Of a stretch of DNA of 64,000 nucleotides, positions 3,039-35,082 are shown one piece after another. Each line of letters opens with the position of its first letter. Positions within the stretch are counted from its first letter, which is position 1. The notes under the pieces are model-generated. The model searched no databases, was not told where the DNA came from, and worked only from the letters and a program-made list of their open reading frames with translations. A program made the translations under genes and the position numbers. Source of the stretch: Rebecca billardiae RCC1528 (Eukaryota > Protista > Haptophyta). Location: contig OZ251244.1 of the NCBI GenBank assembly GCA_965240325.2, positions 620,001-684,000 of the forward strand. The letters are read 5' to 3'.

Positions 3039-4799
3039 TCAAAATCCGTCCATCGGAGTCACGCACGGCCGCTTGGACGCGCGCTCGTCCGCAAAATCGA
3101 CGGCCAGCGCCTCCATCAACTCCAACGCCTCCGCGGGGTCGTCGCGCTTGAAAGCGGCCCAGCGCTCCTGCTGCACGACCGCCTTGATCTGCTCCTTCGC
3201 CAGCGCGCGCACGCCCTCCACCAGCCGAGCGCACGGTCCGCCCGCCGCCTTGGCGTGCCGCAGCATGTCGAGGCAGTTGTCCACGTCCAGAGCAGCCAGC
3301 AGCGCGTCCTCGCACCGACGCGCCACGCCCGCCAGCACGTTGGCCTCAGATGCGGCAGGCACATCAGCCGAGCTCGCAGCTGCTGGCGGCGTTGGCGGCT
3401 GCAGCTTGTTCGTCAGCCGCAGCAGCTCGAGCAGCAACGACGGCTCGGCCGGCAGCGGCGCCTCGCCCACCGAGTGCAGCTGGCGCAGCAGCGCCTCGTG
3501 AGCCGCCGAGGAGAAGGCGGGGTCGGCCCGGACCTCGCGCTGGCCGCCCTCCGCCAGCCCGCCGCCCAGCTGCGCCTCGTAGTACTCGGAGTGCCGCGCG
3601 AGCAGCAGCCGGCTCGCACCCAGCTCGGTGCCGTCCGCGCACTGCAGCACCACGTCGTGCTGCCGCGTGGGCTCGCCCACCGCATCGGCCAGTGAGCACA
3701 GCTTGGCATCCAGCCGCGAATGCGCACTGCGCAGCTCGGCCTCGCTGTCAGCGAGCTCTGCGTGCGACGTGCGTGCTGAGGCGAGCACACGGCGGCGCAC
3801 GTCGTCGTTGGCGTGGAGCAGCAGGGTTTCGAGCACATCTTGCGCGGGGAAGCGTGCGAAGCGTGCTGACTTCTTATTCTCGGGAGCGGGCGGAATGCGC
3901 ATCAGCGCGTCGACAAGGCCAGGCGTGCGCGCAACGGCTGCTCGATGATAATCGCTATGGAGGATGGTCTGCAGCACTGCACCAGCGTAGTACAACGTGC
4001 CGGGCCGCGTCTCCTGGCCAGAGCTCTCCCACGTGGCCAGCAAAAGCTGCACCACACGCTCGCAGAAGCCCGCAACCAGCAAGGCCTTGGGGCGAGTGTG
4101 ACGAATCTCGACAGCGACCGTGTGAATGGCCAGTGCTGCCCCATGCTGCACGCGCGCGTTGGCAGACCCCAGCAGCGGCACGAGCAGTGGGATGGCTTCG
4201 TGCAGGGCGCGGCCGTTCCGCAGAGGCTCCATGGCGGCGAAGAGGCCGATGGCGTGCGCTGCATCGCATTGCGCCATCTCGTCTGCAGAGCGCAGCAGCG
4301 GGATGAGCGGCGCCATGGTGACGCCCGCCGCAGCGATCTCCTCCACCTGCAGGTGGGCTCCGGCGGCCCAGCTGAGCTGATATGCTGCCCGGGCTCGCAC
4401 GCAATCCTCGGCCGAGCCCAGCAGCGATACCAGCGCCCGGATGAGGCCAGAGTCGTAGAGCGCATCGGACACATAACCAATCGGGTCCCGCTTGTGCAGA
4501 AAGAAGATGGCCGTCATGGCAGCCAGCTGCACCTCGGCGGTGTGCTCAGGCGCGAGGAGCTGAAGCAGCGCGGGCAAAGCCTGCGATTGGCCAAACGCCT
4601 CCACGACCACACCTCCATCGTCCTCATCGATGCAGAACGGGACGAGTGCCGCGATCCTCGCCTCGTTGTCCGGAGGCTGAGCGCGCAGCGCGGTGAGGAG
4701 GGTCTCCAGCGCCTCGGGCTTGAGCTCGGCGTGACGAACAAGCTTCGACGCGCGCGAGTGGGCCTCTGTGAGCAGGGTCACCGCCGCGCTGGGATGCAT
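3039..4799 (-). CDS. Armadillo-repeat + C-terminal BTB/POZ domain protein (ARIA/ABAP1-like architecture)
   Basis: Long ORF with repeated LxxLVxLLxS...AAxAL ARM units. BTB motif DVVLQCADGTELGASRLLLARHSEYY followed by BACK-like CEDALLAALDVDNCLDML. Start is at 4799 or the in-frame ATG at 4901. Confidence 0.85.
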   Translation of the reverse strand: MHPSAAVTLLTEAHSRASKLVRHAELKPEALETLLTALRAQPPDNEARIAALVPFCIDEDDGGVVVEAFGQSQALPALLQLLAPEHTAEVQLAAMTAIFFLHKRDPIGYVSDALYDSGLIRALVSLLGSAEDCVRARAAYQLSWAAGAHLQVEEIAAAGVTMAPLIPLLRSADEMAQCDAAHAIGLFAAMEPLRNGRALHEAIPLLVPLLGSANARVQHGAALAIHTVAVEIRHTRPKALLVAGFCERVVQLLLATWESSGQETRPGTLYYAGAVLQTILHSDYHRAAVARTPGLVDALMRIPPAPENKKSARFARFPAQDVLETLLLHANDDVRRRVLASARTSHAELADSEAELRSAHSRLDAKLCSLADAVGEPTRQHDVVLQCADGTELGASRLLLARHSEYYEAQLGGGLAEGGQREVRADPAFSSAAHEALLRQLHSVGEAPLPAEPSLLLELLRLTNKLQPPTPPAAASSADVPAASEANVLAGVARRCEDALLAALDVDNCLDMLRHAKAAGGPCARLVEGVRALAKEQIKAVVQQERWAAFKRDDPAEALELMEALAVDFADERASKRPCVTPMDGF

Positions 4800-4842
4800 C
4801 GAGCTGAGCGTGCGGCCGAGGACGGCGGGCGTACTGATGAGG

Positions 4843-5924
4843 CAAGGGAGGTCCGGGCCGGGAGCTCCCGGCTGCCCAGCGAGCGGCCAGCGCGACGTCA
4901 TCACTGCAAAGTTTTCCCTGATGAGCGCCGGGCGGCGGCACAACGGCGAGGGCGAGTACTCCGCTGGCGGGGCGCGCACGGGGCACAGCGCTGCGGGCGC
5001 GGATGTGCCCGCAGAGCCGGCGCGCGCGGACGGGCTGTTGCGGGAGAGCACTCGGCGCCCTCCTGCGCCGCGCGTCTTGCGCCACGCCTCTTTCGCCTCG
5101 GCTCAGGGCAGCGCGCACATGCGCGCCGCGTCAAGGCCAGCCTTGCCTGCGCCGCAGCCGACCGCGCGCGCGCCGTGCGCGGCGTGGTCGGGAAGGAACG
5201 GGCGCTGCCGCGGGGCGAGGTGGCGACACCATGCGCGCACGCCATGCCGCCCCGTGATGCCGCGAAAGGGCACGGCAATAGATCTGCACAGCTGTTGACG
5301 AGTGCTGATCACTTGCCGTGCCAAGCCACGGACCTGAGCTCGAAGAAGATGATGAAAGAGCATCGGCGCGAGGAAAGCGTCGCATCCAACACCTCTACTT
5401 GACCACACGGTGATGAATATCCATGTAAGAGTAGCCCGCGCGCCCGTCTGGCACTGTTCTGCGTCTCAATGATCGTCCCGACAAGGGTCTACCACATGCA
5501 AACGGACCGACGACACGCTCGTCAAGGCGTGGCGGGGCGGCATGGCGTGCGCGCATGGTGTCGCCAGGCAGCAGCGCTCGTTCCTTCCCGACCACGCCGC
5601 GCACGGCGCGCGCGCGGTCGGCTGCGGCGCAGGCAAGGCTGGCCTTGACGCGGCGCGCATGTGCGCGCTGCCCTGAGCCGAGGCGAAAGAGGCGTGGCGC
5701 AAGACGCGCGGCGCAGGAGGGCGCCGAGTGCTCTCCCGCAACAGCCCGTCCGCGCGCGCCGGCTCTGCGGGCACATCCGCGCCCGCAGCGCTGTGCCCCG
5801 TGCGCGCCCCGCCAGCGGAGTACTCGCCCTCGCCGCTGCCGCCGCCCGGCGCTCAGGGAAAACTTTGCAGTGACGTCGCGCTGGCCGCTCGCTGGTCAGG
5901 AGCTCCCGGCCCGGACCTCCCTTG
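4843..5924. repeat. Inverted repeat: arms 4843-5254 and 5533-5924, about 280-bp spacer
   Basis: Arms are near-identical reverse complements. The ORF track gives the same peptides on opposite strands (5003..5257 + vs 5522..5776 -; 3039..5051 - vs 5728..6078 +). Confidence 0.9.
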
Positions 5925-6558
5925 GATGAGGTCGCCTTCTCTCCGGCTCGCGGGCGGCGTCGCCCCGGCGCTGGCGAGCGGCGAGCCGGCGACGCTGATG
6001 AAGAAACAGAGTGCCCTTCCGCTTGGTCTCAGCCCGCTCTACAGTCGGGATGTGCTGGTGAAGTGGTCAGTAGCTTGATGAAGAATGTACACGCGGAGCG
6101 GCCGCCATGCACTACAATACTGCATGTACCGTACTTGTACTAATTCTATGATTTAAAGACACAGGCACGAGGGCGCAGCTCTCCTGATTCGTCTGTATAG
6201 TGGTACTGGTCGAAGCTTGCAGCAGTGGCAGTGGTGTGAGCACGTTGATGTTGGTCGCCATGGTGGATGTCGTTGTTGTCGTCGTCAACGTCGTCAGGCC
6301 CACCAGGAAGACAGGAAGTGCATGGGTACCAAATCAAAGGCGAGTGAGCATGTTGGCGTCGGCAAGGCCGTCCCCTACTTGGTCAGCAGCTGGTGGATGA
6401 TGTCGTCGCCTACTTGGTCAGTGGCTGGTCATGGTGGACGATGGTGTAGCCTGTTCTTGGTCAGCAGACAGCAGCTGGTCCGGATGATGTTGTGGCCGAA
6501 GTTAGTAGTAGTCGGACTCGCCGTCGGGGACTGGTTCCGGTACTTGTGGGGGACTGTG

Positions 6559-6606
6559 ATCTCGCCTGCCTGAGCTGTGTGCGTCTCTTATTCTTAGTAA
6601 ACTGTA
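6559..6606 (+). repeat. Copy of the TA|CAGTTTACTAAG terminal repeat
   Basis: atctcgcctgcctgagctgtgtgcgtctcttattcttagtaaactgta matches the 2826-2886 copy. Confidence 0.85.
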
Positions 6607-7234
6607 CCGGGCAACGGGCTCCTGTCCCAAGCCACAGACTGATGACAGAGCCTGCCAGGAAACGGCAACGCAGAGACGAGTACGGAGTAGCCCGTACCAC
6701 GCCGCCGACCGAGTGGCGGCCGTCATCACCGCGCGTTGCAGCTGCTTCGTGCGGCAACCAATCGATCATGATGCCATTTATTAACGTATGTCAGTGATGT
6801 CCGGTTAAATAGTGTTAGACAGAAACATATAATTAATGCGTGTTGAGTCTGTGTGCAGTGTGCCCAGATTGTGAGTTCTGCCCTGTTGCATGACTGTTCT
6901 GTGAGTGTGACTGTGTTCATTCAGTGACGCCACCGGCACCGGGCGTCGACCGCGTGACGACGCCCGATTATATTATTGCGTCGTGTACTATAATATAATA
7001 TTATAAAATATAAATCAGTATTCAGTAGTGCGCGGGCGGTAGTGATGCGCAACTATAACGCCACGGTAGCTAGGCCCGCAGGGCCGAGCAGGCGGCCCGG
7101 CCCGAGCGCGGATAACGTGATGGGCCCCAGGGCCAGGTGCATGGTCTCGGGTCGGCACGGTGCCCTCCCAGAGTCAGATCGAGTGGCGGCCTGCCCGAGT
7201 GTTCTGCTGCTCAGCCGCCCTCGGTAGACAGTCG

Positions 7235-23590: not shown

Positions 23591-25558
23591 CCGCTGCCGC
23601 GCTCGCGCAGGCGCATGGGATGGCACGTGTTGGCTCGATCATCGGGATCAAGCGGGCTGCGCAGGCAGTGGGCTGGCGTACGAGCTCACTACACGCGCAG
23701 TGTCAGAATACGCTGCATCAGGTGTGCCCCGTCGGCTTTGCTGCTGAGCATACGGCACACGACGGGCACTCGAGCAGTGTGGCTGGCGATGAGCCCGAGC
23801 ATCCCAGCTGGCATGCGAGTGGCTTACTGGGCGCAGCTGATGCACGAACACCCTGCGTTGCACACCGAAGGTGCCAGAAGCACGCGTTCTTGCCATCCAG
23901 TCGTATCGTCCGGCCCCCATGCGCTCAAGACGGGGGAGGAGATCTGCACGCGTACGCGCGCGCTGCCGATTCCCGAGGAGCGCATCTGGGCGCTCGGGTT
24001 GCCTCCACAGGGGCACCTGAGCTTGACTCGAGGGCTGAGTGGAGCAGGCGCCGAAAGACGCACGACGAGTGGCCGGCGTGATTGTCTGGGGTCTCCTCGT
24101 GGCGCGCTTGCACGTTTTCGGCGCATCACCACTGTGCTGACTTTGCGGCGGCGCCCCGACCGCGCCCCGAGTGACCGTGTCATCGGCTGACCCGCTGACT
24201 GCACCAGTGCACCGTAGTCCCGGTACGTCCGTACCAGGCGCAGCTGAGACTCGCGCAGAGTAGCGCGGCGCCTATGGCTATAGCCCGGTCGTAGCTTGCG
24301 CGTATAGGAGTAGCAGTTGTCGTCATGCGACCTGCTCGCCTGCTGCGCTAATAAAATTTGATGACTGGCCGACCGCGGACCAAACCTGTGCACACGCAGC
24401 AGGATTCCACTTCCAGCGACGCGGGCAGCGTGCCCGCGCGTCGACCCGACGGCCAGCAGTCAGCTCGCGTCGCGTCGGCGGACGGCTGGCTGGCGGATGA
24501 GTCGGCAGGCTTGGGGAGCCCGCGGGCGCGGCACGCCACGCCGATTGCATGCTGCTGTAGTTGCGCATCGCCTCTTCGTAGACGCGCTGCCTCACTCTCA
24601 GCTGAGCTCGGGCCGCCGGGTGCGACGACGGCTGGCGGGAGCCGCTGACAGTGACGTCATCGGACGACCGACCGCGAACTCCGACCTGGCTGACGGCAGC
24701 GCGAGCAGCGCAGCACGGCGCGGCGCGATGCGATCTGCGGCGTGACGTGGCGGTGGGCCCGCGTGACACGCTGCCAGCGCCACTGGCGCGCGAGACCCCG
24801 CCCCGTCTCCGCAGCGCCGCGCTCACATGTGACCACGACCTGCACAACACGGGCCGTGGTCAGAAAGCCGTCGCGCGCGTGTTCATTTACGCGGCACCTT
24901 GGTGCTGAGCGCCAGCCGAGAGGTAGTGGCGACGACGACAGCCACTCCAGGTCGATGTGCACCTGCGTCTGTGCCCGGGTGCCGCTGGGATGCGATTGAG
25001 GATGAGATTGCGGCAGCATGCCCTGATATGAGCAGCGGTCAGTTTGGAGAGCGTGAGTCGTGCCAGCACACGAGAGTAGACGTGCACGTTTCGAGCAGCC
25101 GAGCTGGACCATGAAAGTCGGGAAACCAGCGCGCATGCCGCGCACCCGAAAGAGCCGACCATCTCCGCATGCTCAGAGCAGCCGGCGGCGCGCTCGCAGA
25201 GTCGCTTCGGAGTCGCTTTGCGGCCGTCTCGGCGCGTGTCATGTGGAGCTGCTCTCGAGGCGAAGGAGGAGGAAGGCGTTGATCAGCGCCGCTGAAGACT
25301 AGGACTAGGCTCTCTCGCGAGGTCCGCCGCGCGGTCTACGCCGCCGATCACGGCCTCTTGAGGACGGTCGGCCAGCGCGCGCGTCGGCAGCCATCGTGAC
25401 GCCTCTCATTCAACTTTCGGCCCGTGTTAGCGCACTGTGACGTTTTGTGGACGACGACGGTGGGGCGAGGACGACGGGCGCTGGCGCGCCGCGAGGCGGC
25501 CGCAGCCCTCATCCAGGCCTCGCAGGCGGACGGCTGCAGGGCAGTCACTACAAAAAAT

Positions 25559-26235
25559 CCCCGCCAGCGGAGCATCGGGCAAGACCCAGACCCTCCGCCG
25601 GCGGAGATTTTTGTGGCCACGAAAAATCCCCGCTGGCGGAGCATGGAATGCTCCGCTGGCGGAGCCTGGGCTTGCAGGATTGACACAACAAACTAGTTAC
25701 CAGAAGTCTGTCAACCACCGAACAGCAGTCACCTCCGCTGGTGGAGCTCGCTAATGAGCCATGCCTTTGTAAACTAATACACTCGGCACTTGAACTGAGC
25801 TCCGCTGGCGGAGCTTCGGGGGCGCCGAATGCCATTCTTGATTGACCCACCTGACTTGAACTGAGCTCCGCTGGCGGAGCGTTGGTGGTCAGCGCCGTGT
25901 GTCATATTGGAGAAATAATGCTAATAAGCCTTTCAACGCATTCATACTCTGCTGTGCCACACATTTTCAACCTCCGCTGGCGGAGCTCACTGGCCTATTC
26001 GACTTGAACTGAGCTCCACTGGTGGAGCCTCGGCTGCGCCGAATGTCCTTAATCGATGACCCACTCTCGACTTGAGCTGAGCTCCCCTGGCGGAGCTTTG
26101 GTGGCGCCGCATGCCATATTGGAGTAACGCGGAAGCGTCAACCGTAGTCATATCTATATTGAGACTCAACCTCCGCTGGCGGAGCTCGTGTACCTACTAG
26201 TATTCAACTTTAACTGAGCTCCGCTGGCGGAGCCT
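25559..26235. repeat. Array of palindromes (AG)CTCCGCTGGCGGAG(CT), left arm outer part, about 12 copies
   Basis: Direct reading; mirrored at about 34210-34910. Confidence 0.95.
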
Positions 26236-26252
26236 CAGCGGCTGTGTCGAAT

Positions 26253-28658
26253 AGACCCCTTCAGGGACGGTTACGGCAGCCATGCTGACCCAGACCAGCG
26301 CAGGTCGTCTCGGGGTACGCTGGTGGCGTCTGGATGCCCGGCGAGCACCTTGCTGCGGCGTCGACGTGCTAGCCGACGGGCGTTAAGGACTTGTTGAAGG
26401 ACTTGGCGCCCGTCTCGGAGGTGATCGGCGTTGATGACCTCGCTGGTAAGGTGTTCGCCGTCGACGCGAGCATCTGGATCCACCAGCTCGCCGCTGTCCG
26501 TGCTGATGTGCTCGAGGCGGGTGATTATCCAACGCGGCCTCTTCTTGTCGCGCGCGCGACGGCCCCATCACATGGGGCTGATTGCACAAGGTTGCCTGCG
26601 CGATAGTTTTGCGACCGCGTTAGACTCGGCTGCTCGGAGCGATGCTGCGAATACGTGTGCGCGCCTGTCAACAGCGGGGCAATCCTTCACCACGCGACCC
26701 TACTGGTTTCTGCGTGGGAACGATGGCGCAAGGGCAAGACCACGCCCACCAGTGACATCTGTAGCCTAGCGATCAGCCAGCTGTTCGGCGCGTGCCACGT
26801 GGCTGGCGCTGCTGCACCGCCAGCGGCGCGCGGGCTGCGCTGTCACCGCACGGCAGCAGCTGTGGCTGCGACACACCGGTCGAGCCGCGACACGGTGCCT
26901 GCTGGCCCATGGCTGCCCATGCGCGGATTCGTGCACAGCCACGACACGGTATGGCAGGGCCGCTTGATCTGCTCGCGCGAGAGCCTTTGGGTGCCAGCTA
27001 GCGGGGGCGCCGCACACGCGCCCGGTCGCGCTGCGCAGCAGACGGGTGCAGTGTTGCGGGTGCCGAGGGCTGCGCACGCATCGCACGCGTTGCTGTGCGC
27101 TGCTCGCGGGTGCTCGTGGGTGCTCGCTCAGGCGCGTGGACCGTCAGGCCACCCAGCGGCCGACGCGCCTCGTCCGCTGCCGCGAGCAGCCCCGCGCTGG
27201 CGACTGGCGATGCCCGTCTGCAGCAGGTTGGCGGTGCATCGGACGGCGCGCGCCCGGCGAGTGCCCTCAGCGGCATGCTGCTGGACGGTGCACGCCAGGG
27301 TTGGCCCCCACGCGAATATGAATCGCTCCTGGCAGGCTGGTAGCTTGTAGAGATGGACGACAAACTGCGCCGGGCGGGGCCGCGCTCGGCTCCTCGGCCG
27401 AGAATCACAGCGTGTCGCCGCACTGCATGTCTCTCACCGATCCGCACTGGATCACAGTGCACGGCCGCCCGCGGAGCGCCGCAGACAGCCCTTAGACTGG
27501 ATGCAGCGCGGCAGGTGTTTAACAAAACTGAGTAGAGAGCGCGGCAGCACCGCGCGCGCGCACGGTGCAAGCAGCACGCGTACTCGCCGGATGCCCTTAC
27601 CCCCACGTGCGCGTGCACGCCCGCAGTGCGGTCTCACTGAGTGACCTAATTCGCGCCGGAGTGTTTGGCTCCGCGTATACAATGAGCACTACGTAGTTCG
27701 GCTGGCACAGGGCAGGCAGCTCCGCTCACGCCTGACGGGCGGTGGTGCCGTGGCGCGGCGCGGCGTGGCTGAGATTTCGCTCAATGATAGGAGTAGGCAG
27801 CACGCTGATGCTGCGCCACCGCCGCAGCGGCGTGGAACCCCGCGGTATTACCCACACGAGTGTGCATATAAGCACTACATCACGGCCTGCACAGCAGCAG
27901 CGGTAGTGCACGACTCTAGCTGAAGCCGAGTGTGTCACACCGTCTGTCAAGACTGATGTGTGACGCGCACGACCCCTGAAGTGACGGCACTGACAGTGAC
28001 TGACGCACACACTACGACGATGAGTAGTAAAACAAATTCCGAGCCGCGCTTTCGCGGATGCACTGATGATGCTGAGTTGGTGCCACTGAGATCATGAAGC
28101 GCGAGGCCCCGAAGCATACCCGCACGAGTGCGCACGAGCTGGCCACGGCTCAGATTCGAGCTATCCGTTCGGCCGCACGCTCGCAACGGCAATGGCAGCG
28201 TGTGCGGCGGTATAGTGGCCCCAGTGCATGCTACTCGACGGCGCGTGGCGCGAGAGCGTTGCAACGTACCCGGCGCCACGCACCAGCCGAACTGCCCCCG
28301 CCCACGCACCCCGTCTCACACACCTCGCCCAACCTGACTCCAGTACGCGCCGTCACGGCCGAACCAAACGGCCGAGCAGCAACTACTGAGTGCAGCTGGT
28401 CGTGGGTGCGCGTGGTGGTCGAGACGAGCACACTCGAGCGGGATCAGCGGGCCGGCGGCAGCGCCAACAGTCGCACAAGCATCGACCTGTCCCACAGGGC
28501 AGGTCGCCCCCTCGTGGCTTCTGGCTCTGCGAGCTCGGCCGCCGCGCATGCTCACCCTCATTGAGGCCCCGAGACGCCCAGCGTACCCCGAGACGCTCCT
28601 CGAGACGGGCTGCGAACCGACATCAGCATGGCTGCCGTAACCGTCCCTGAAGGGGTCT
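26253..28658 (+). mobile_element. 2.4-kb DNA transposon with 36-bp perfect TIRs and AT target duplication (ISL2EU/PHIS-like), nested in the left arm of the foldback
   Basis: TIR AGACCCCTTCAGGGACGGTTACGGCAGCCATGCTGA at 26253-26288 and its reverse complement at 28623-28658. AT at 26251-26252 and 28659-28660. The empty site GTCGAATGTCC is preserved in the right arm (about 34196-34206, reverse). Confidence 0.9.
26376..26770 (+). pseudogene. Degenerate Exo1/XPG/FEN1 N-terminal nuclease fragment plus a SWIM-like remnant
   Basis: (ACG in place of ATG)GVKDLLKDLAP...VDDLAGKVFAVDASIWIHQ matches the XPG-N consensus MGIxGLLxxL...LxGKxxAIDASxWL. Downstream CEYVCAPVNSGAILHHATLL...TPTSDICS. Confidence 0.7.
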
Positions 28659-28689
28659 ATGTCCTTATCGATGGCCGACGTCTTGACTT

Positions 28690-29585
28690 GAGCTGAGCTC
28701 CGCTGGCGGAGCTTTGGTGGCGCCGCATGCCATTTATGGGAATAATGTGAAGCCGTTAACCATAATCATATCCATATTGACACTCAACCTCCGCTGGCGG
28801 AGCTCACGGACCTATTCGACTTGAGCTGAGCTCCGCTGGCGGAGCTTTGGTGGCGCCGCATATCATATTGGAGTAATGCGCGAAGCCGTCAACCGTAATC
28901 ATATCCATATTGATACTCAACCTCCGCTGGCGGTGCTCACGGACCTATTCGACTTGAACTGAGCTCCGCTGGCGGAGCCTCGGCTCCGCCGAATGTCCTT
29001 ATCGATGGCCCACGTCTTGACTTGAGCTGAGCTCCGCTGGCGGAGCTTTGGTGGCGCCGCATGTCATATTGTAGTAATGCAAAGCCGTTAACTACCGTAA
29101 TCATATCCATATTGACACTCAACCTCCGCTGGCGGAGCTCGCGGGCCTATTCAACTTGAACTGAGCTCCGCTGGCGGAGCCTCGGCTGCGCCGAATGTCC
29201 TTATCGATGGCCCACTTGACTTGAGCTGAGCTCCGCTGGCGGAGCTTTGGTGGCGCCGCATGTCATATTGGAGTAATGCAACGCCGTTAACTACCGTAAT
29301 CATATCCATATTGACACTCAACCTCCGCTGGCGGAGCTCGCGGGCCTATTCAACTTGAACTGAGCTCCGCTGGCGGAGCCTCGGCTGCGCCGAATGTCCT
29401 TATCGATGATGGCCCACGACTTGACTTGAGCTGAGCTCCGCTGGCGGAGCTTTGGTGGCGCCGAATGTCATATTGGAGTAATGCGAAGTCGTTAACCGTA
29501 ATACTATCCATATTGACACTCAACCTCCGCTGGCGGAGCTCACGGACGTATTCAACTTGAACTGAGCTCCGCTGGCGGAGCCTCT
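28690..29585. repeat. Palindrome array, left arm inner part, about 14 copies in a roughly 200-bp three-palindrome higher-order unit
   Basis: The three intervening sequences recur periodically. Confidence 0.95.
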
Positions 29586-30224
29586 GCTTGTGGTTTGCTG
29601 CAATTGGGGCTGGGCAGCCTGGGCTCAGCATGGGGCAGCTGTTCACAGCCCAGGCGGGGCGTCACCGCCTGTGAGCCGTCGGTGGGCAGGGCCGACGGCG
29701 TCGCAGAGCTCATGCGTGGGAGCAGCGCGTCGAGGAAGCGATCAAGGTCGAGAAGGAAGGGGCAAGCAGCAGGGGCTGCCTGTACGTTTGTACATGCCTC
29801 CACACCGGTGCACATCACCCTTGCTCACTGCAGTCGTGAACAGTGCTGCCACTCATCTCATCATCGCTCACCATGCAGTGACGGCCGAGCTGCGGCGAAC
29901 TCTCACAGGCACCGAACACGCATCGGCTGTGCCCGCTGGTGCTGGCATGCGCTGTCCTCTACTTGCTGTCGGACAGCAAGGAGACGGCACAGCCGCATCT
30001 GCGAGCGGGCGAGGTGATGCTGTCCAGTGTCCTCTGCTCAGCGAGGCTGAGAGGCTGAGCACGGATCACGGATAGTGAGCCCTGGTATCTCAACGCATCC
30101 AGGAGAGCAGTTGGTGCATGCCTGTGCTCAGACGTGCAGGACCAACCATCCGGTGCTGATTCAAGCACCCGCGCCAACAGCGGCGGCACTCAACTCCACG
30201 CTGCTGATGCGGCCGCACAGCTGC

Positions 30225-32640
30225 AGGGATGGTACCACGGCGGGCTGCGGCAGGCGCTGCAGCTGGCAGCTCGGTGGTGCGCGCCCGAGGGGCCTGGGCG
30301 CTGGGCGCAGCGAGCGCGGTGACGTTGCTCGCCTCGCCCAGCGCGCTGGAGCCGCTGCCACCGGGCGCTGCTGTGCCCGCGTCGAGCGTGGGCTGCCGCA
30401 GCTGCGCTCGACTCCGCGCCGAGTGCGGTGGCAGCAGGGATGTTGCCACGTCGGGCGGCGGCTATCACTTTGGCTGGCAGCTCGGTGGTGCCTGCCCGAG
30501 GGGCCTGGGCGGTGGACGCACCGAGCGCGGTGACGTTGCTCGCCTCGCCCAGCGCGCTGGAGCCGTTTGCCATCCGGCGCTGCGGTGTCCGCGCCCAGCC
30601 GGAGCAGCACGAGGTGCGCTCGACTCCGCACCCGTGCGGCGGCAGCAGCAGGGATTGTACCACGGCGAGCGGCGGCAGTCGCTGCAGCTGGTAGCTCGGC
30701 GGTGCCTGCCCAAGGGGCCTGGGCGACGGACGCGCCGAGCGAGCTGACGCCCCTCGCTTCCCCTATCACGCTCGAGCCGCTGCCATTTGATGCTGCTGAA
30801 CCGTTCGGGCAGCTGCGGACTGTGCGCTCGACTCCACGCCGCGTGCGGCCGCAGGCAGCAGCAGCAGCAGGCTGGTAATTAACAGCTGCTGCTCAGATCT
30901 CCGTGACTGCTCGGTTGCTGCGTATGAGCCAGGTGAGTGAGCCGCTGAGTCGCAGGGGCCGCGTGAATTGACTTGCGACCGCACGCCGGTATAGGCTTAA
31001 GACGGCGTACGTCCGAGTCCCGATCAGCAGCGCAGGAGTTTTGAGAACGCGGTGACGAGTCACACGCAGCTACTCTTATTATGATGGCGCTATACTTTTT
31101 TCTGTACGTAGTAGTAATAGGTTACGACTACGCTGCCGGCCTCGCCCTCAGCATTACATTGACGGCGTATGGTAGCGCAGGTCCGCCTGATGACCGTTTT
31201 ATTGCGCATCTTCATGATGATGATGACGATATGACGATAACGACTCCTCCGACTCCTGAGTCACATAAGTGTGACACCGCCACTGGATGACACTGGATGA
31301 CACGGGCTACTTACGTACTCAGCTCAGATCATGCGCGCCTGCTACTCGTAGTCGGGCTCCGGTCAGCGGGGAGCGCGCGGCGCATCATCATCATCAGTCG
31401 CTATCTGATGCATATCCGCGGCGCAGTGATGTCGTAGTACTGATGATGCGTGCGCTGAGATCTGGGCCGCGGCACTTCGGCGCGCCTTGCTCGGCCTCAC
31501 CGACGCCGGGCCGTACTTGTTCGCGCGCCCGGCGCCGGGCTAGCTCAAAGAGCTGACCGCAGCGGCCCCCGTGCCCCGGAAGGCCTGCGGCCCTCACAGG
31601 TCATTGGCAGGCAGCAGTGTCCGGGGCTGAGGCCTGCCGGGTTCTCCCCGATTCGAATTCACCAATGTGACCGATGGTACCGCCTGCTGCCGTCAGCCGG
31701 CGGAAGAAGTGTCACAACGGCTGCTGCTGGCCAGCATATCGGATGCGTGCATCGGCGTCACCGCATTGGGCGCGTCTGCCGCCCAGGCCCCTCGCGCGCA
31801 CACAACCGAGCTGATCGCTGCATCCACCTCCGCCGCCGCCAGTGGCGCCTTCCCTGCTGCTGCAGCCACACTCGGCGCGGAGTCGAGCGCAGCTGCTGCT
31901 GCCTAGGCCGGTCACGCCCCTCGGGCGCGCACCACCGAGCTGCCAGCTGCATCGACCGCCACCACCCGCCGAGGCATCATCCCTCCCACTGGCGCGGAGT
32001 CGAGCGCAGCTGCCAGCTGTGACAGCTAGCTGCCCCGGCGGGGCGCGGAGCCGCGGACACCGCAGCGCCGGATGGCAGCGGCTCCAGCGCGCTGGGCGAG
32101 GCGAGCAACGTCATCGCGCTCGGTGCGTCCACCGCCCAGGCCCCTCGGGCAGGCACCACCGAGCTGCCAGCCAAAGTGATAGCCGCCGCCCGCGTGGTAC
32201 CATCCCTGCTGCTGCCGCCGCACTCGGCGAGGAGTTGAGTGCAGCTGCGGCAGCCCAAGCTGGGCGCGGGCAGCGCAGCGCGCGATGGCAGCGGCTCCAG
32301 CGCGCTGGGCGAGGCGAGCAGCGTCACCGCGCTCGCTGTGCCCAGCGCCCAGGCCCCTCGGGCGCGCACCACCGAGCTGCCAGCCGCAGCGCCTGCCGCA
32401 GCCCGCGGTGGCACCAAGTCCCCGCTGCTGCCGCCGCACTCGGCGCGGAGTCGAGCGCAGCTGCTGCAGCCCAAGCTGGGCGCGGGCACAGCAGCGTCGG
32501 ATGACAGCGGCTCCAGCGCGCTGGGCGATGCGAGAGGCGTCATCGCGCTTGGTGCGCCCGGCGCCCAGGCCCCTCGGGCAGGCACCACCGAGCTGCCAGC
32601 TGCAGCGCCCGCCGTCGCCCGCCGTGGTACCATCCCTGCA
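30225..32640. repeat. Degenerate roughly 190-bp GC-rich tandem repeats flanking the foldback centre (30225-30860 and 31740-32640, opposite orientations)
   Basis: Repeated peptide-like unit SSALGEASNVTAL..AQAPRA.TTELPAA in several frames. Confidence 0.8.
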
Positions 32641-33279
32641 GCTGTGCGGCCGCATCAGCAGCGTGGAGTTGAGTGCCGCCGCTGTTGGCGCGGGTGCTTG
32701 AATCAGCACCGGATGGTTGGTCCTGCACGTCTGAGCACAGGCATGCACCAACTGCTCTCCTGGATGCGTTGAGATACCAGGGCTCACTATCCGTGATCCG
32801 TGCTCAGCCTCTCAGCCTCGCTGAGCAGAGGACACTGGACAGCATCACCTCGCCCGCTCGCAGATGCGGCTGTGCCGTCTCCTTGCTGTCCGACAGCAAG
32901 TAGAGGACAGCGCATGCCAGCACCAGCGGGCACAGCCGATGCGTGTTCGGTGCCTGTGAGAGTTCGCCGCAGCTCGGCCGTCACTGCATGGTGAGCGATG
33001 ATGAGATGAGTGGCAGCACTGTTCACGACTGCAGTGAGCAAGGGTGATGTGCACCGGTGTGGAGGCATGTACAAACGTACAGGCAGCCCCTGCTGCTTGC
33101 CCCTTCCTTCTCGACCTTGATCGCTTCCTCGACGCGCTGCTCCCACGCATGAGCTCTGCGACGCCGTCGGCCCTGCCCACCGACGGCTCACAGGCGGTGA
33201 CGCCCCGCCTGGGCTGTGAACAGCTGCCCCATGCTGAGCCCAGGCTGCCCAGCCCCAATTGCAGCAAACCACAAGCAGA

Positions 33280-34912
33280 GGCTCCGCCAGCGGAGCTCAG
33301 TTCAAGTTGAATACGTCCGTGAGCTCCGCCAGCGGAGGTTGAGTGTCAATATGGATAGTATTACGGTTAACGACTTCGCATTACTCCAATATGACATTCG
33401 GCGCCACCAAAGCTCCGCCAGCGGAGCTCAGCTCAAGTCAAGTCGTGGGCCATCATCGATAAGGACATTCGGCGCAGCCGAGGCTCCGCCAGCGGAGCTC
33501 AGTTCAAGTTGAATAGGCCCGCGAGCTCCGCCAGCGGAGGTTGAGTGTCAATATGGATATGATTACGGTAGTTAACGGCGTTGCATTACTCCAATATGAC
33601 ATGCGGCGCCACCAAAGCTCCGCCAGCGGAGCTCAGCTCAAGTCAAGTGGGCCATCGATAAGGACATTCGGCGCAGCCGAGGCTCCGCCAGCGGAGCTCA
33701 GTTCAAGTTGAATAGGCCCGCGAGCTCCGCCAGCGGAGGTTGAGTGTCAATATGGATATGATTACGGTAGTTAACGGCTTTGCATTACTACAATATGACA
33801 TGCGGCGCCACCAAAGCTCCGCCAGCGGAGCTCAGCTCAAGTCAAGACGTGGGCCATCGATAAGGACATTCGGCGGAGCCGAGGCTCCGCCAGCGGAGCT
33901 CAGTTCAAGTCGAATAGGTCCGTGAGCTCCGCCAGCGGAGGTTGAGTATCAATATGGATATGATTACGGTTGACGGCTTCGCATTACTCCAATATGATAT
34001 GCGGCGCCACCAAAGCTCCGCCAGCGGAGCTCAGCTCAAGTCGAATAGGTCCGTGAGCTCCGCCAGCGGAGGTTGAGTGTCAATATGGATATGATTATGG
34101 TTAACGGCTTCACATCATTCCCATAAATGGCATGCGGCGCCACCAAAGCTCCGCCAGCGGAGCTCAGCTCAAGTCAAGACGTCGGCCATCGATAAGGACA
34201 TTCGACACAGCCGAGGCTCCGCCAGCGGAGCTCAGTTAAAGTTGAATACTAGTAGGTACACGAGCTCCGCCAGCGGAGGTTGAGTCTCAATATAGATATG
34301 ACTACGGTTGACGCTTCCGCGTTACTCCAATATGGCATGCGGCGCCACCAAAGCTCCGCCACTCAGCCAGGGGAGCTCAGCTCAAGTCGAGAGTGGGTCA
34401 TCGATTAAGGACATTCGGCGCAGCCGAGGCTCCACCAGTGGAGCTCAGTTCAAGTCGAATAGGCCAGTGAGCTCCGCCAGCGGAGGTTGAATGTGTGGCA
34501 CAGCAGAGTATGAATGCGTTGAAAGGCTTAGCATTATTTCTCCGATATGACACACGGCGCTGACCACCGACGCTCCGCCAGCGGAGCTCAGTTCAAGTCA
34601 GGTGGGTCATCATTCATCAAGAATGGCATTCGGCGCCCCCGAAGCTCCGCCAGCGGAGCTCAGTTCAAGTGCCGAGTGTATTAGTTTACAAAAGGCATGG
34701 CTCATTAGCGAGCTCCGCCAGCGGAGGTGACTGCTGTTCGGTGGTTGACAGACTTCTGACCATAACTAGTACGTTTGTTGTGTCATTCCTGCAAGCCCAG
34801 GCTCCGCCAGCGGAGCATTCCATGCTCCGCCAGCGGGGATTTTTCGTGGCCACAAAAATCTCCGCCGGCGGAGGGTCTGGGCCCCTTGCCCGGATGCTCC
34901 GCTGGCGGAGAC
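33280..34912. repeat. Palindrome array, right arm, about 26 copies of CTCCGCCAGCGGAG
   Basis: Reverse complement of the two left-arm arrays joined together. Confidence 0.95.
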
Positions 34913-34932
34913 TTTTTGTAGTGACTCTTCTG

Positions 34933-35065
34933 CTGAACGAATGTTTCCGGCGGCGCTACCATCGGCGACGGCTTCATGGGCGGTGACCGTTGCGCGGGCG
35001 TCAATGGCTCAATCCGCTCGCCTGCCTGAGCTGTGTGCGTCTCTTATTCTTATTAGTAAACTGTA
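34933..35065 (+). mobile_element. Right end of a Tc1/mariner-like element split by the foldback insertion
   Basis: Ends in ...ctcttattcttattagtaaactg|ta. 25440-25536 joined to 34933-35005 matches the uninterrupted reverse copy at about 40486-40640. Confidence 0.75.
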
Positions 35066-35082
35066 CCGCCTGGTAAGCTAGT

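Follow-up and report, generated by a model that had tools for sequence, protein, structure and literature searches.

A gene-less foldback transposon family with palindrome arrays in its arms in the haptophyte Rebecca billardiae

In flies, foldback elements cause inversions as well as other kinds of rearrangement, and both the working of their long repetitive arms and the enzymes that move them are unsettled. The Foldback element (FB) of Drosophila makes 9-bp target duplications, hAT elements end in YARNG, and a 7-bp duplication points to a P-type element or one of a few rarer transposon groups. Galileo, a Drosophila foldback of the P superfamily, makes 7-bp (sometimes 8-bp) duplications and has arms lengthened by tandem repeats (PMC4168063), in which reiterated sites for THAP-domain binding have been proposed (PMC3688188). 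In the haptophyte Tisochrysis lutea, Shanks is a 6,768-bp transposon with two open reading frames (ORFs), two non-identical 26-bp terminal inverted repeats (TIRs), and 7-bp target-site duplications (TSDs), and Repbase places it in hATv, a small hAT-like group known only from haptophytes (PMC10138859). A full-text literature search (foldback + transposon + haptophyte) and related searches returned no foldback transposon in haptophytes. We analyzed a 64,000-nt stretch (hereafter, the window) of Rebecca billardiae RCC1528 (GenBank assembly GCA_965240325.2, contig OZ251244.1, positions 620,001 to 684,000 of the forward strand), in which positions 25537-34932 hold a single hairpin-like element of 9.4 kb. 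This is in all likelihood a mobile, gene-less foldback and not a CACTA element. Overall, it is best explained as a young non-autonomous foldback moved in trans, most likely by an hATv-like enzyme, a reading to which we assign a probability of roughly 0.55. An earlier note, made from the letters of the sequence alone, had observed the feature correctly and misclassified it in part; the family is new, and elements of its kind were known before.

The element consists of two mirror-image arms of approximately 4 kb around a 1.27-kb spacer, with a 2.4-kb transposon nested in the left arm. The longest gap-free inverted pair found by a repeat search of the window joins 28880-30437 to 32425-33982 (1,558 nt, 99% identity), which covers and extends the apparently indel-free mirror that the earlier note had placed at 28937-30322 and 32540-33925. 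The mirror continues outward at 28659-28880 and 33980-34201 with 100% identity, and the outer arms pair too, with further pairs out to 25585-25693 and 34773-34881. Tandem units of 199-202 bp were detected by Tandem Repeats Finder at 28818-29588 and 33274-34042, and units of 211-216 bp were detected at 30219-30785 and 32052-32644. None of the 10 interior ORFs matched a Pfam family, and the element region matched no Rfam family; the long ORFs are the chance expectation for a sequence of 65% G+C.

When the organism's own 72-Mb assembly was searched with the first 424 bp of the element, 13 full copies were recovered on nine contigs, each with one 5'-type and one 3'-type end. Seven of them are 6,981 bp long and differ from one another by 0-0.3%; in this canonical form, the arms span 7-2861 and 4121-6981 and enclose a spacer of 1.26 kb. 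The window copy corresponds to the canonical form plus the nested insertion and differs from the canonical copies by 0.5-0.8%. The comparisons covered the outermost 1.9 kb or so at either end of the copies, together with a single canonical copy in full and three loci of a sister family (one complete, two truncated), and at this coverage the low divergence of the canonical copies points to a very recent burst. The sister family (on contigs C21, C5/C6, and C12) is approximately 9 kb long and 85-90% identical, with a four-part repeat unit. The identity of the central spacer was 97-98% across the 13 copies and approximately 90% in three sister copies. Its orientation relative to the two tips was constant in 13 of 13 copies and flipped between the sister copies on C21 and C5/C6; therefore, recombination between the arms occurs. 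The 22.7-kb contig C6 (C6:971-9953) carries the reverse complement of the C5 sister copy (C5:1580715-1589694) with 0.00% difference in the compared segment and is probably a haplotig or a redundant contig.

Long inverted repeats are error-prone in assembly, and the mirror structure might accordingly be an artefact, or else a one-off local inverted duplication. This reading is refuted, and we give it next to no credence: the 13 copies on nine contigs share the architecture while having their own flanks and duplications, and the arms of the window copy differ by the nested insertion. The earlier note had deemed an artefact unlikely and had taken 25537-34932 as one foldback-type mobile element, and the mirror arms together with the 13 copies bear out both statements.

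The shared sequence begins in every copy with CAGGGCAGT on one side and, read inward, with CAGAAGAGT on the other. The two ends are non-identical in all copies, as in Shanks, and the triplet at tip positions 4-6 (GGC at one end versus AAG at the other) is the same in all copies whose ends were read, the sister family included. One base within the last three positions of the 3' tip is altered in three of the 13 copies. Perfect 7-bp duplications were found at seven of the 12 end pairs with readable flanks (13 full copies). The remaining readable pairs comprised one matching at 6 of 7 bases, one of 6 bp, one of 7 bp beside a 4-bp terminal deletion, and two without a duplication, and one further flank reads N. 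A perfect 7-bp duplication also flanks the sister copy on C6, which brings the total to eight among 14 end pairs. The family thus combines the features of the foldback class, namely, long inverted tandem-repeat arms, a short non-coding middle, dispersed copies, and target duplications, with a duplication length found in both the P superfamily (7-8 bp in Galileo) and hATv (7 bp in Shanks). An 8.9-kb copy at C5:791052-799970, which has mutually inverted flanks (GCTCGGAAGTCC vs. GGACTTCTCCGAGC) and no target duplication, may be embedded in a further palindromic structure or mark the site of a rearrangement.

The window copy was inserted in a dispersed repeat, eight empty copies of which read GGACGGCTGAACG, while the occupied site reads GGACGGCTG, the element, and CTGAACG. 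The alignment of empty and occupied sites makes the CAG/CTG boundary exact and shows that the 9 bp outside the CACTA word belong to the element. The boundary at CAG...CTG and the CTG duplication, both proposed in the earlier note, were therefore upheld for the window copy by the eight empty sites, and the duplication was not upheld as a rule of the family, for which the length is 7 bp and the 3-bp CTG duplication of the window copy is the exception. A deletion that trimmed a 7-bp duplication to 3 bp and left the element untouched is unlikely, and we read the 3-bp duplication as an atypical integration through a shorter stagger or aberrant gap repair.

A CACTA/EnSpm-type element with true termini at CACTA and 3-bp duplications was also considered. 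It would account for the word CACTACAAAAA, which was confirmed to lie 9 bp internal to both ends, for the 3-bp duplication of this one copy, and for the subterminal repeat arrays, which are typical of CACTA elements. However, the ends are CAG...CTG in the 13 copies and against the eight empty sites, every copy carries along the 9 bp that lie outside CACTA, and eight perfect 7-bp duplications stand against 3 bp in the window copy only. Furthermore, the CACTA word is not kept in an older relic, found on C17 with 92% identity across 305 bp and the tip CAGGGCAGTCAAAACAAGAAATCC, which has CAAAACAAG at that place. Termini at CACTA are refuted, the description "CACTA-related" in the earlier note has to be given up, and a CACTA/EnSpm origin is very improbable.

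The arms carry palindromes of 14-18 bp with the core CTCCGC-YR-GCGGAG. The pattern CTCCGC..GCGGAG occurs 43 times in the window, all within 25537-34932, and the whole genome contains 759 exact palindromes, compared with 21 for the reversed control. When two or fewer mismatches were allowed, exactly 26 palindromes were counted per arm at start-to-start spacings of 42, 68, and 91 bp in units of 199-202 bp, which made precise the approximately 26 palindromes and the three-part unit of approximately 200 bp first noticed. A CRISPR array was rejected as an explanation of this pattern. The stretches between palindromes are not unique spacers and fall into three conserved classes (42, 68, and 91 bp), of which the 67- and 91-bp classes are mutually paralogous, and the neighboring genes, e.g., those for a choline-transporter-like protein and a ferric reductase, are eukaryotic, as is the host; the term "CRISPR-looking" reflected a visual likeness only.

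With repeat segments anchored on the palindromes themselves, the divergence between the canonical and sister families was 4.8% over the 18 palindrome bases versus 19.5% in the intervening DNA (Mann-Whitney p = 2e-9). This contrast is not an ascertainment effect because the spacing of 42/67/65/92 is unbroken, and almost no palindrome has decayed beyond recognition. In these alignments, the palindromes behave as constrained cis sites and diverge about fourfold more slowly than the intervening DNA.

The arrays could alternatively serve the host or the element in a way other than docking, as a source of hairpin RNA or small RNA, or they could be a satellite expanding by unequal exchange. A transcript across both arms would fold into multi-kb double-stranded RNA, the paralogy of the 67- and 91-bp segments implies growth by duplication, and the inner 214-bp repeat is a satellite common to other loci. 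However, in a neutral satellite the palindrome would not be conserved fourfold better than the adjacent DNA from one sub-family to the other, and one 203-nt unit folded only modestly better than its shuffles (z = -2.3). We consider these alternatives improbable. Long arrays of the 214-bp satellite, approximately 80% identical to the inner tandem repeat of the foldback, were found at C19:192324-197317 and C16:1183832-1189667, each as two oppositely oriented blocks; this arrangement suggests that the satellite has also given rise to other foldback families. Arm repeats common to free satellite arrays are also a feature of Tetris (PMC4079207). Tetris and FB of Drosophila resemble the present family in their long inverted tandem-repeat arms and little or no coding capacity, whereas their sequences and host are unrelated. 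A metagenome scan with the tip pattern gave zero matches, and a scan with a two-palindrome pattern gave 11 contigs otherwise dissimilar to the element. An identical 14-nt palindrome is present five to seven times in unrelated metagenome contigs, Ga0315298_1014421 and Ga0265297_10212568 (46-68% G+C), which do not otherwise resemble the element.

The two arms of each copy are homogenised against each other, except near the tips. Over the inner 619-bp non-repetitive segment, the arms of one copy differ by 0.00% in the window copy, 0.16% in the canonical copy, and 0.33-0.50% in sister copies, while arms of the same side differ by 1.7-4.3% between lineages. The reverse would be expected of arms that evolved independently, and the comparison therefore indicates concerted evolution. 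Within the terminal 250 bp, the window copy and the seven canonical copies show an identical arm-to-arm difference of 9 mismatches and 5 indels, and the counts in the other five copies are similar; inward of this zone, the arms are 0-1% apart. The window copy is the most symmetrical, with 2 mismatches in approximately 1,165 bp and equal unit numbers, where the canonical copies have a 197-bp indel. Its arms are mirror-perfect past position 720, and alleles of the "left-arm" type are present in its right arm at five diagnostic sites. The earlier note had ascribed the likeness of the arms to recent origin or conversion, and both youth and concerted evolution are supported.

No coding region was found in copies with these ends. 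An autonomous copy with the termini of the element, for which the earlier note had proposed a genome search, was not found either; all 35 genome matches to the tip word AGTCACTACAAAAA are foldback ends. A "long" copy on C17 (C17:639938-645999; L036:3939-10000) was rejected as a transposase-bearing copy. Two old foldback fragments (canonical 1-320 and 1480-2855) there flank 4.4 kb that carry a short-chain dehydrogenase gene (L036:4882-5922) and not a transposase, and the arrangement could reflect either the capture of a gene or a foldback-associated rearrangement.

Searches of the genome with Pfam PF12017 and PF21789 gave nothing. PF21787 gave one match (32 bits), an intact P/THAP9-type ORF of 1,317 codons at C21:1532842-1536795 (L057:4343-8296, minus strand). 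Its motifs PHLIKKLRN and LEHHFGQVR align with the Drosophila P transposase, its language-model neighbors are all P/THAP9 clusters, and it is present in a single copy. This ORF could have been domesticated or could represent a solitary autonomous element. If a transposase of the P superfamily (THAP9/P-type) moved the foldback, the family would be a true analogue of Galileo, which shares its 7-bp (sometimes 8-bp) duplications, long repetitive arms, and occurrence of two-arm copies without genes that reach 9 kb (PMC4168063), and which has THAP sites within its arm repeats (PMC3688188). The intact ORF in the genome speaks for this possibility. However, neither a palindrome array nor a foldback tip nor a TIR+TSD pair is present in the 10 kb around the ORF, no other P-type candidate was returned by PF12017 or PF21789, and the CAGGG tip of the foldback looks hAT-like and matches Shanks. 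A P-type driver is rather unlikely, and an hATv-like driver is favored over it.

An hATv-like driver is suggested by the 7-bp duplications and the similar tip. The TIRs of Shanks start with TAGGGCGGTCAAAC, and their tip consensus is YAGGGCRGTCA (PMC10138859). Compared by eye as short words, the 5' tip of the foldback, CAGGGCAGTCA, agrees with the Shanks TIR at 9 of 11 bases with both differences being transitions, a match too short to prove homology, and the tip of the C17 relic, CAGGGCAGTCAAA, agrees at 11 of 13 bases. In Shanks as in the foldback, the word GCCACGAAAA is located approximately 80-110 bp inside the end, and this 10-mer occurs within the window only at the two element ends. On these grounds, the chance that the driver is a hAT-like enzyme of the haptophyte Shanks/hATv group is about even. 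The hAT dimerisation domain PF05699 gave one weak, broken match in the genome. The likeness to Shanks extends to the 7-bp duplications, the two non-identical ends, and the recent activity of the families. In contrast, Shanks is 6.8 kb long with two ORFs and its non-autonomous derivatives are deletion copies of 0.5-3 kb (PMC10138859), whereas the foldback has no recognizable protein, arms of 3-4 kb, and 52 palindromes.

By analogy, the closest case in manner of working is Galileo. Both have a foldback architecture with arms extended by internal repeats, 7-bp duplications, and transposons nested in the arms. They differ in that the host belongs to another kingdom, the foldback tips are hAT-like, no sequence link to any P-type element was found, and no coding copy of the foldback is known; the THAP site is short and asymmetric, whereas the reiterated site of the foldback is a perfect palindrome. 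A gene-less Galileo copy of 9,021 bp with tandem-repeat arms of 4.2 and 4.7 kb (PMC4168063) is a precedent for the arrays and arms that had been called exceptionally large. Particular to the present family are the constrained perfect palindrome of 14-18 bp, the fixed asymmetry of the tips, and a possible link to a hAT-like lineage found only in haptophytes.

In the explanation that we prefer, a transposase provided in trans would cut at the CAG tips and make 7-bp staggered cuts in the target. The 26 palindromes per arm would be reiterated docking sites, each made of two inverted GCGGAG half-sites and thus probably bound by a dimer. They would give the enzyme specificity and help the pairing of ends, as proposed for the THAP sites in Galileo arms, and the arms would be kept alike by inter-arm gene conversion or by template switching during repair. 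Several observations weigh against this explanation. The duplication is 3 bp in the window copy and 6 bp in one other, and it is missing from two copies; the palindrome-anchored segmentation slightly favors the apparent conservation of the palindromes; the tip match is short, and the 3' tip agrees with Shanks at only 6 of 11 bases; and an autonomous copy with these ends is missing. The Shanks TIR is also absent from this genome, its sole match being a chance one beside a Myb gene, and any local hATv-like driver must therefore have diverged ends. More tentatively, and at less than even odds, the family may be a still active foldback derivative of the haptophyte-restricted hATv lineage, with palindromic docking arrays selected for a dimeric domain and with tips kept different by selection while the rest is homogenised. 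We know of no foldback derivative of hATv, although the literature on hAT-derived foldbacks was not searched.

The features of the window copy are listed in Table 1. The empty site of the nested transposon, GTCGAATGTCCTT, is supplied by the right arm, and the canonical 6,981-bp copies lack this insertion. The inverted ends of the nested transposon begin with AGACCCCTTCAGGG, and an XPG/Exo1-like N-terminal motif is readable near 26420-26490. The host dispersed repeat (25137-25536 and 34933-35075) has more than 40 copies and is cut at 25440, to the left of the foldback, by a second repeat, which terminates in CACTGTG and shows 99-100% identity among approximately 20 loci. The region around the element is a nest of young transposons.

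Table 1. Features of the foldback element and its insertion site, in window positions.
Feature	Position	Strand	Basis
Left target-duplication copy, CTG, 3 bp	25534-25536		Comparison with eight empty host-repeat copies
5' tip, CAGGGCAGT then CACTACAAAAAA; CAG is the element start	25537-25557	+	Identical across the 13 copies, whose flanks are unrelated
Outer palindrome array of the left arm with 12 palindromes and an end-specific zone of approximately 250 bp	25558-26252	+	Palindrome mapping
Nested unrelated transposon, 2,406 bp, inverted ends of approximately 35 bp	26253-28658		AT duplication at 26251-26252 and 28659-28660
Inner palindrome array of the left arm with 14 palindromes in 200-bp units (42+68+91 bp)	28659-29599	+	Tandem-repeat and palindrome mapping
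Left arm, inner non-repetitive segment	29600-30218	+	100% identity to the mirror at 32644-33262
Left tandem array with 2.7 copies of a 211-bp unit; a related 214-bp satellite is present elsewhere in the genome	30219-30785	+	Tandem Repeats Finder and genome search
Central spacer, 1.27 kb, non-coding, family-specific	30786-32051	+	Copy comparison; no Pfam or Rfam match
Right 216-bp tandem array, 2.8 copies	32052-32644	-	Tandem Repeats Finder and five inverted pairs
Right arm, inner non-repetitive segment	32644-33262	-	Mirror comparison
Right arm palindrome array, 26 palindromes	33274-34911	-	Tandem-repeat and palindrome mapping
3' tip, read inward CAGAAGAGT then CACTACAAAAAG; CTG is the element end	34912-34932	-	In all 13 copies
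Right target-duplication copy, CTG, 3 bp	34933-34935		Empty-site comparison

New here are the empty-site proof of the 3-bp duplication, the constraint on the palindromes, the concerted arms with a fixed asymmetry of the tips, the relic without CACTA, and the lead to Shanks/hATv. For genome annotation, the family should be labeled as a foldback with 7-bp duplications and not as CACTA. The family offers clean material for the study of foldback elements, with seven copies less than 0.3% apart, a diverged sister family that shows the constrained bases, fixed differing tips, and concerted arms. If the driver belongs to the hATv/Shanks lineage, which is mobile in cultured Tisochrysis, the docking-site hypothesis would be experimentally testable, and if the family is indeed a still active hATv foldback, an alga would allow a direct test of what reiterated sites contribute to foldback transposition.

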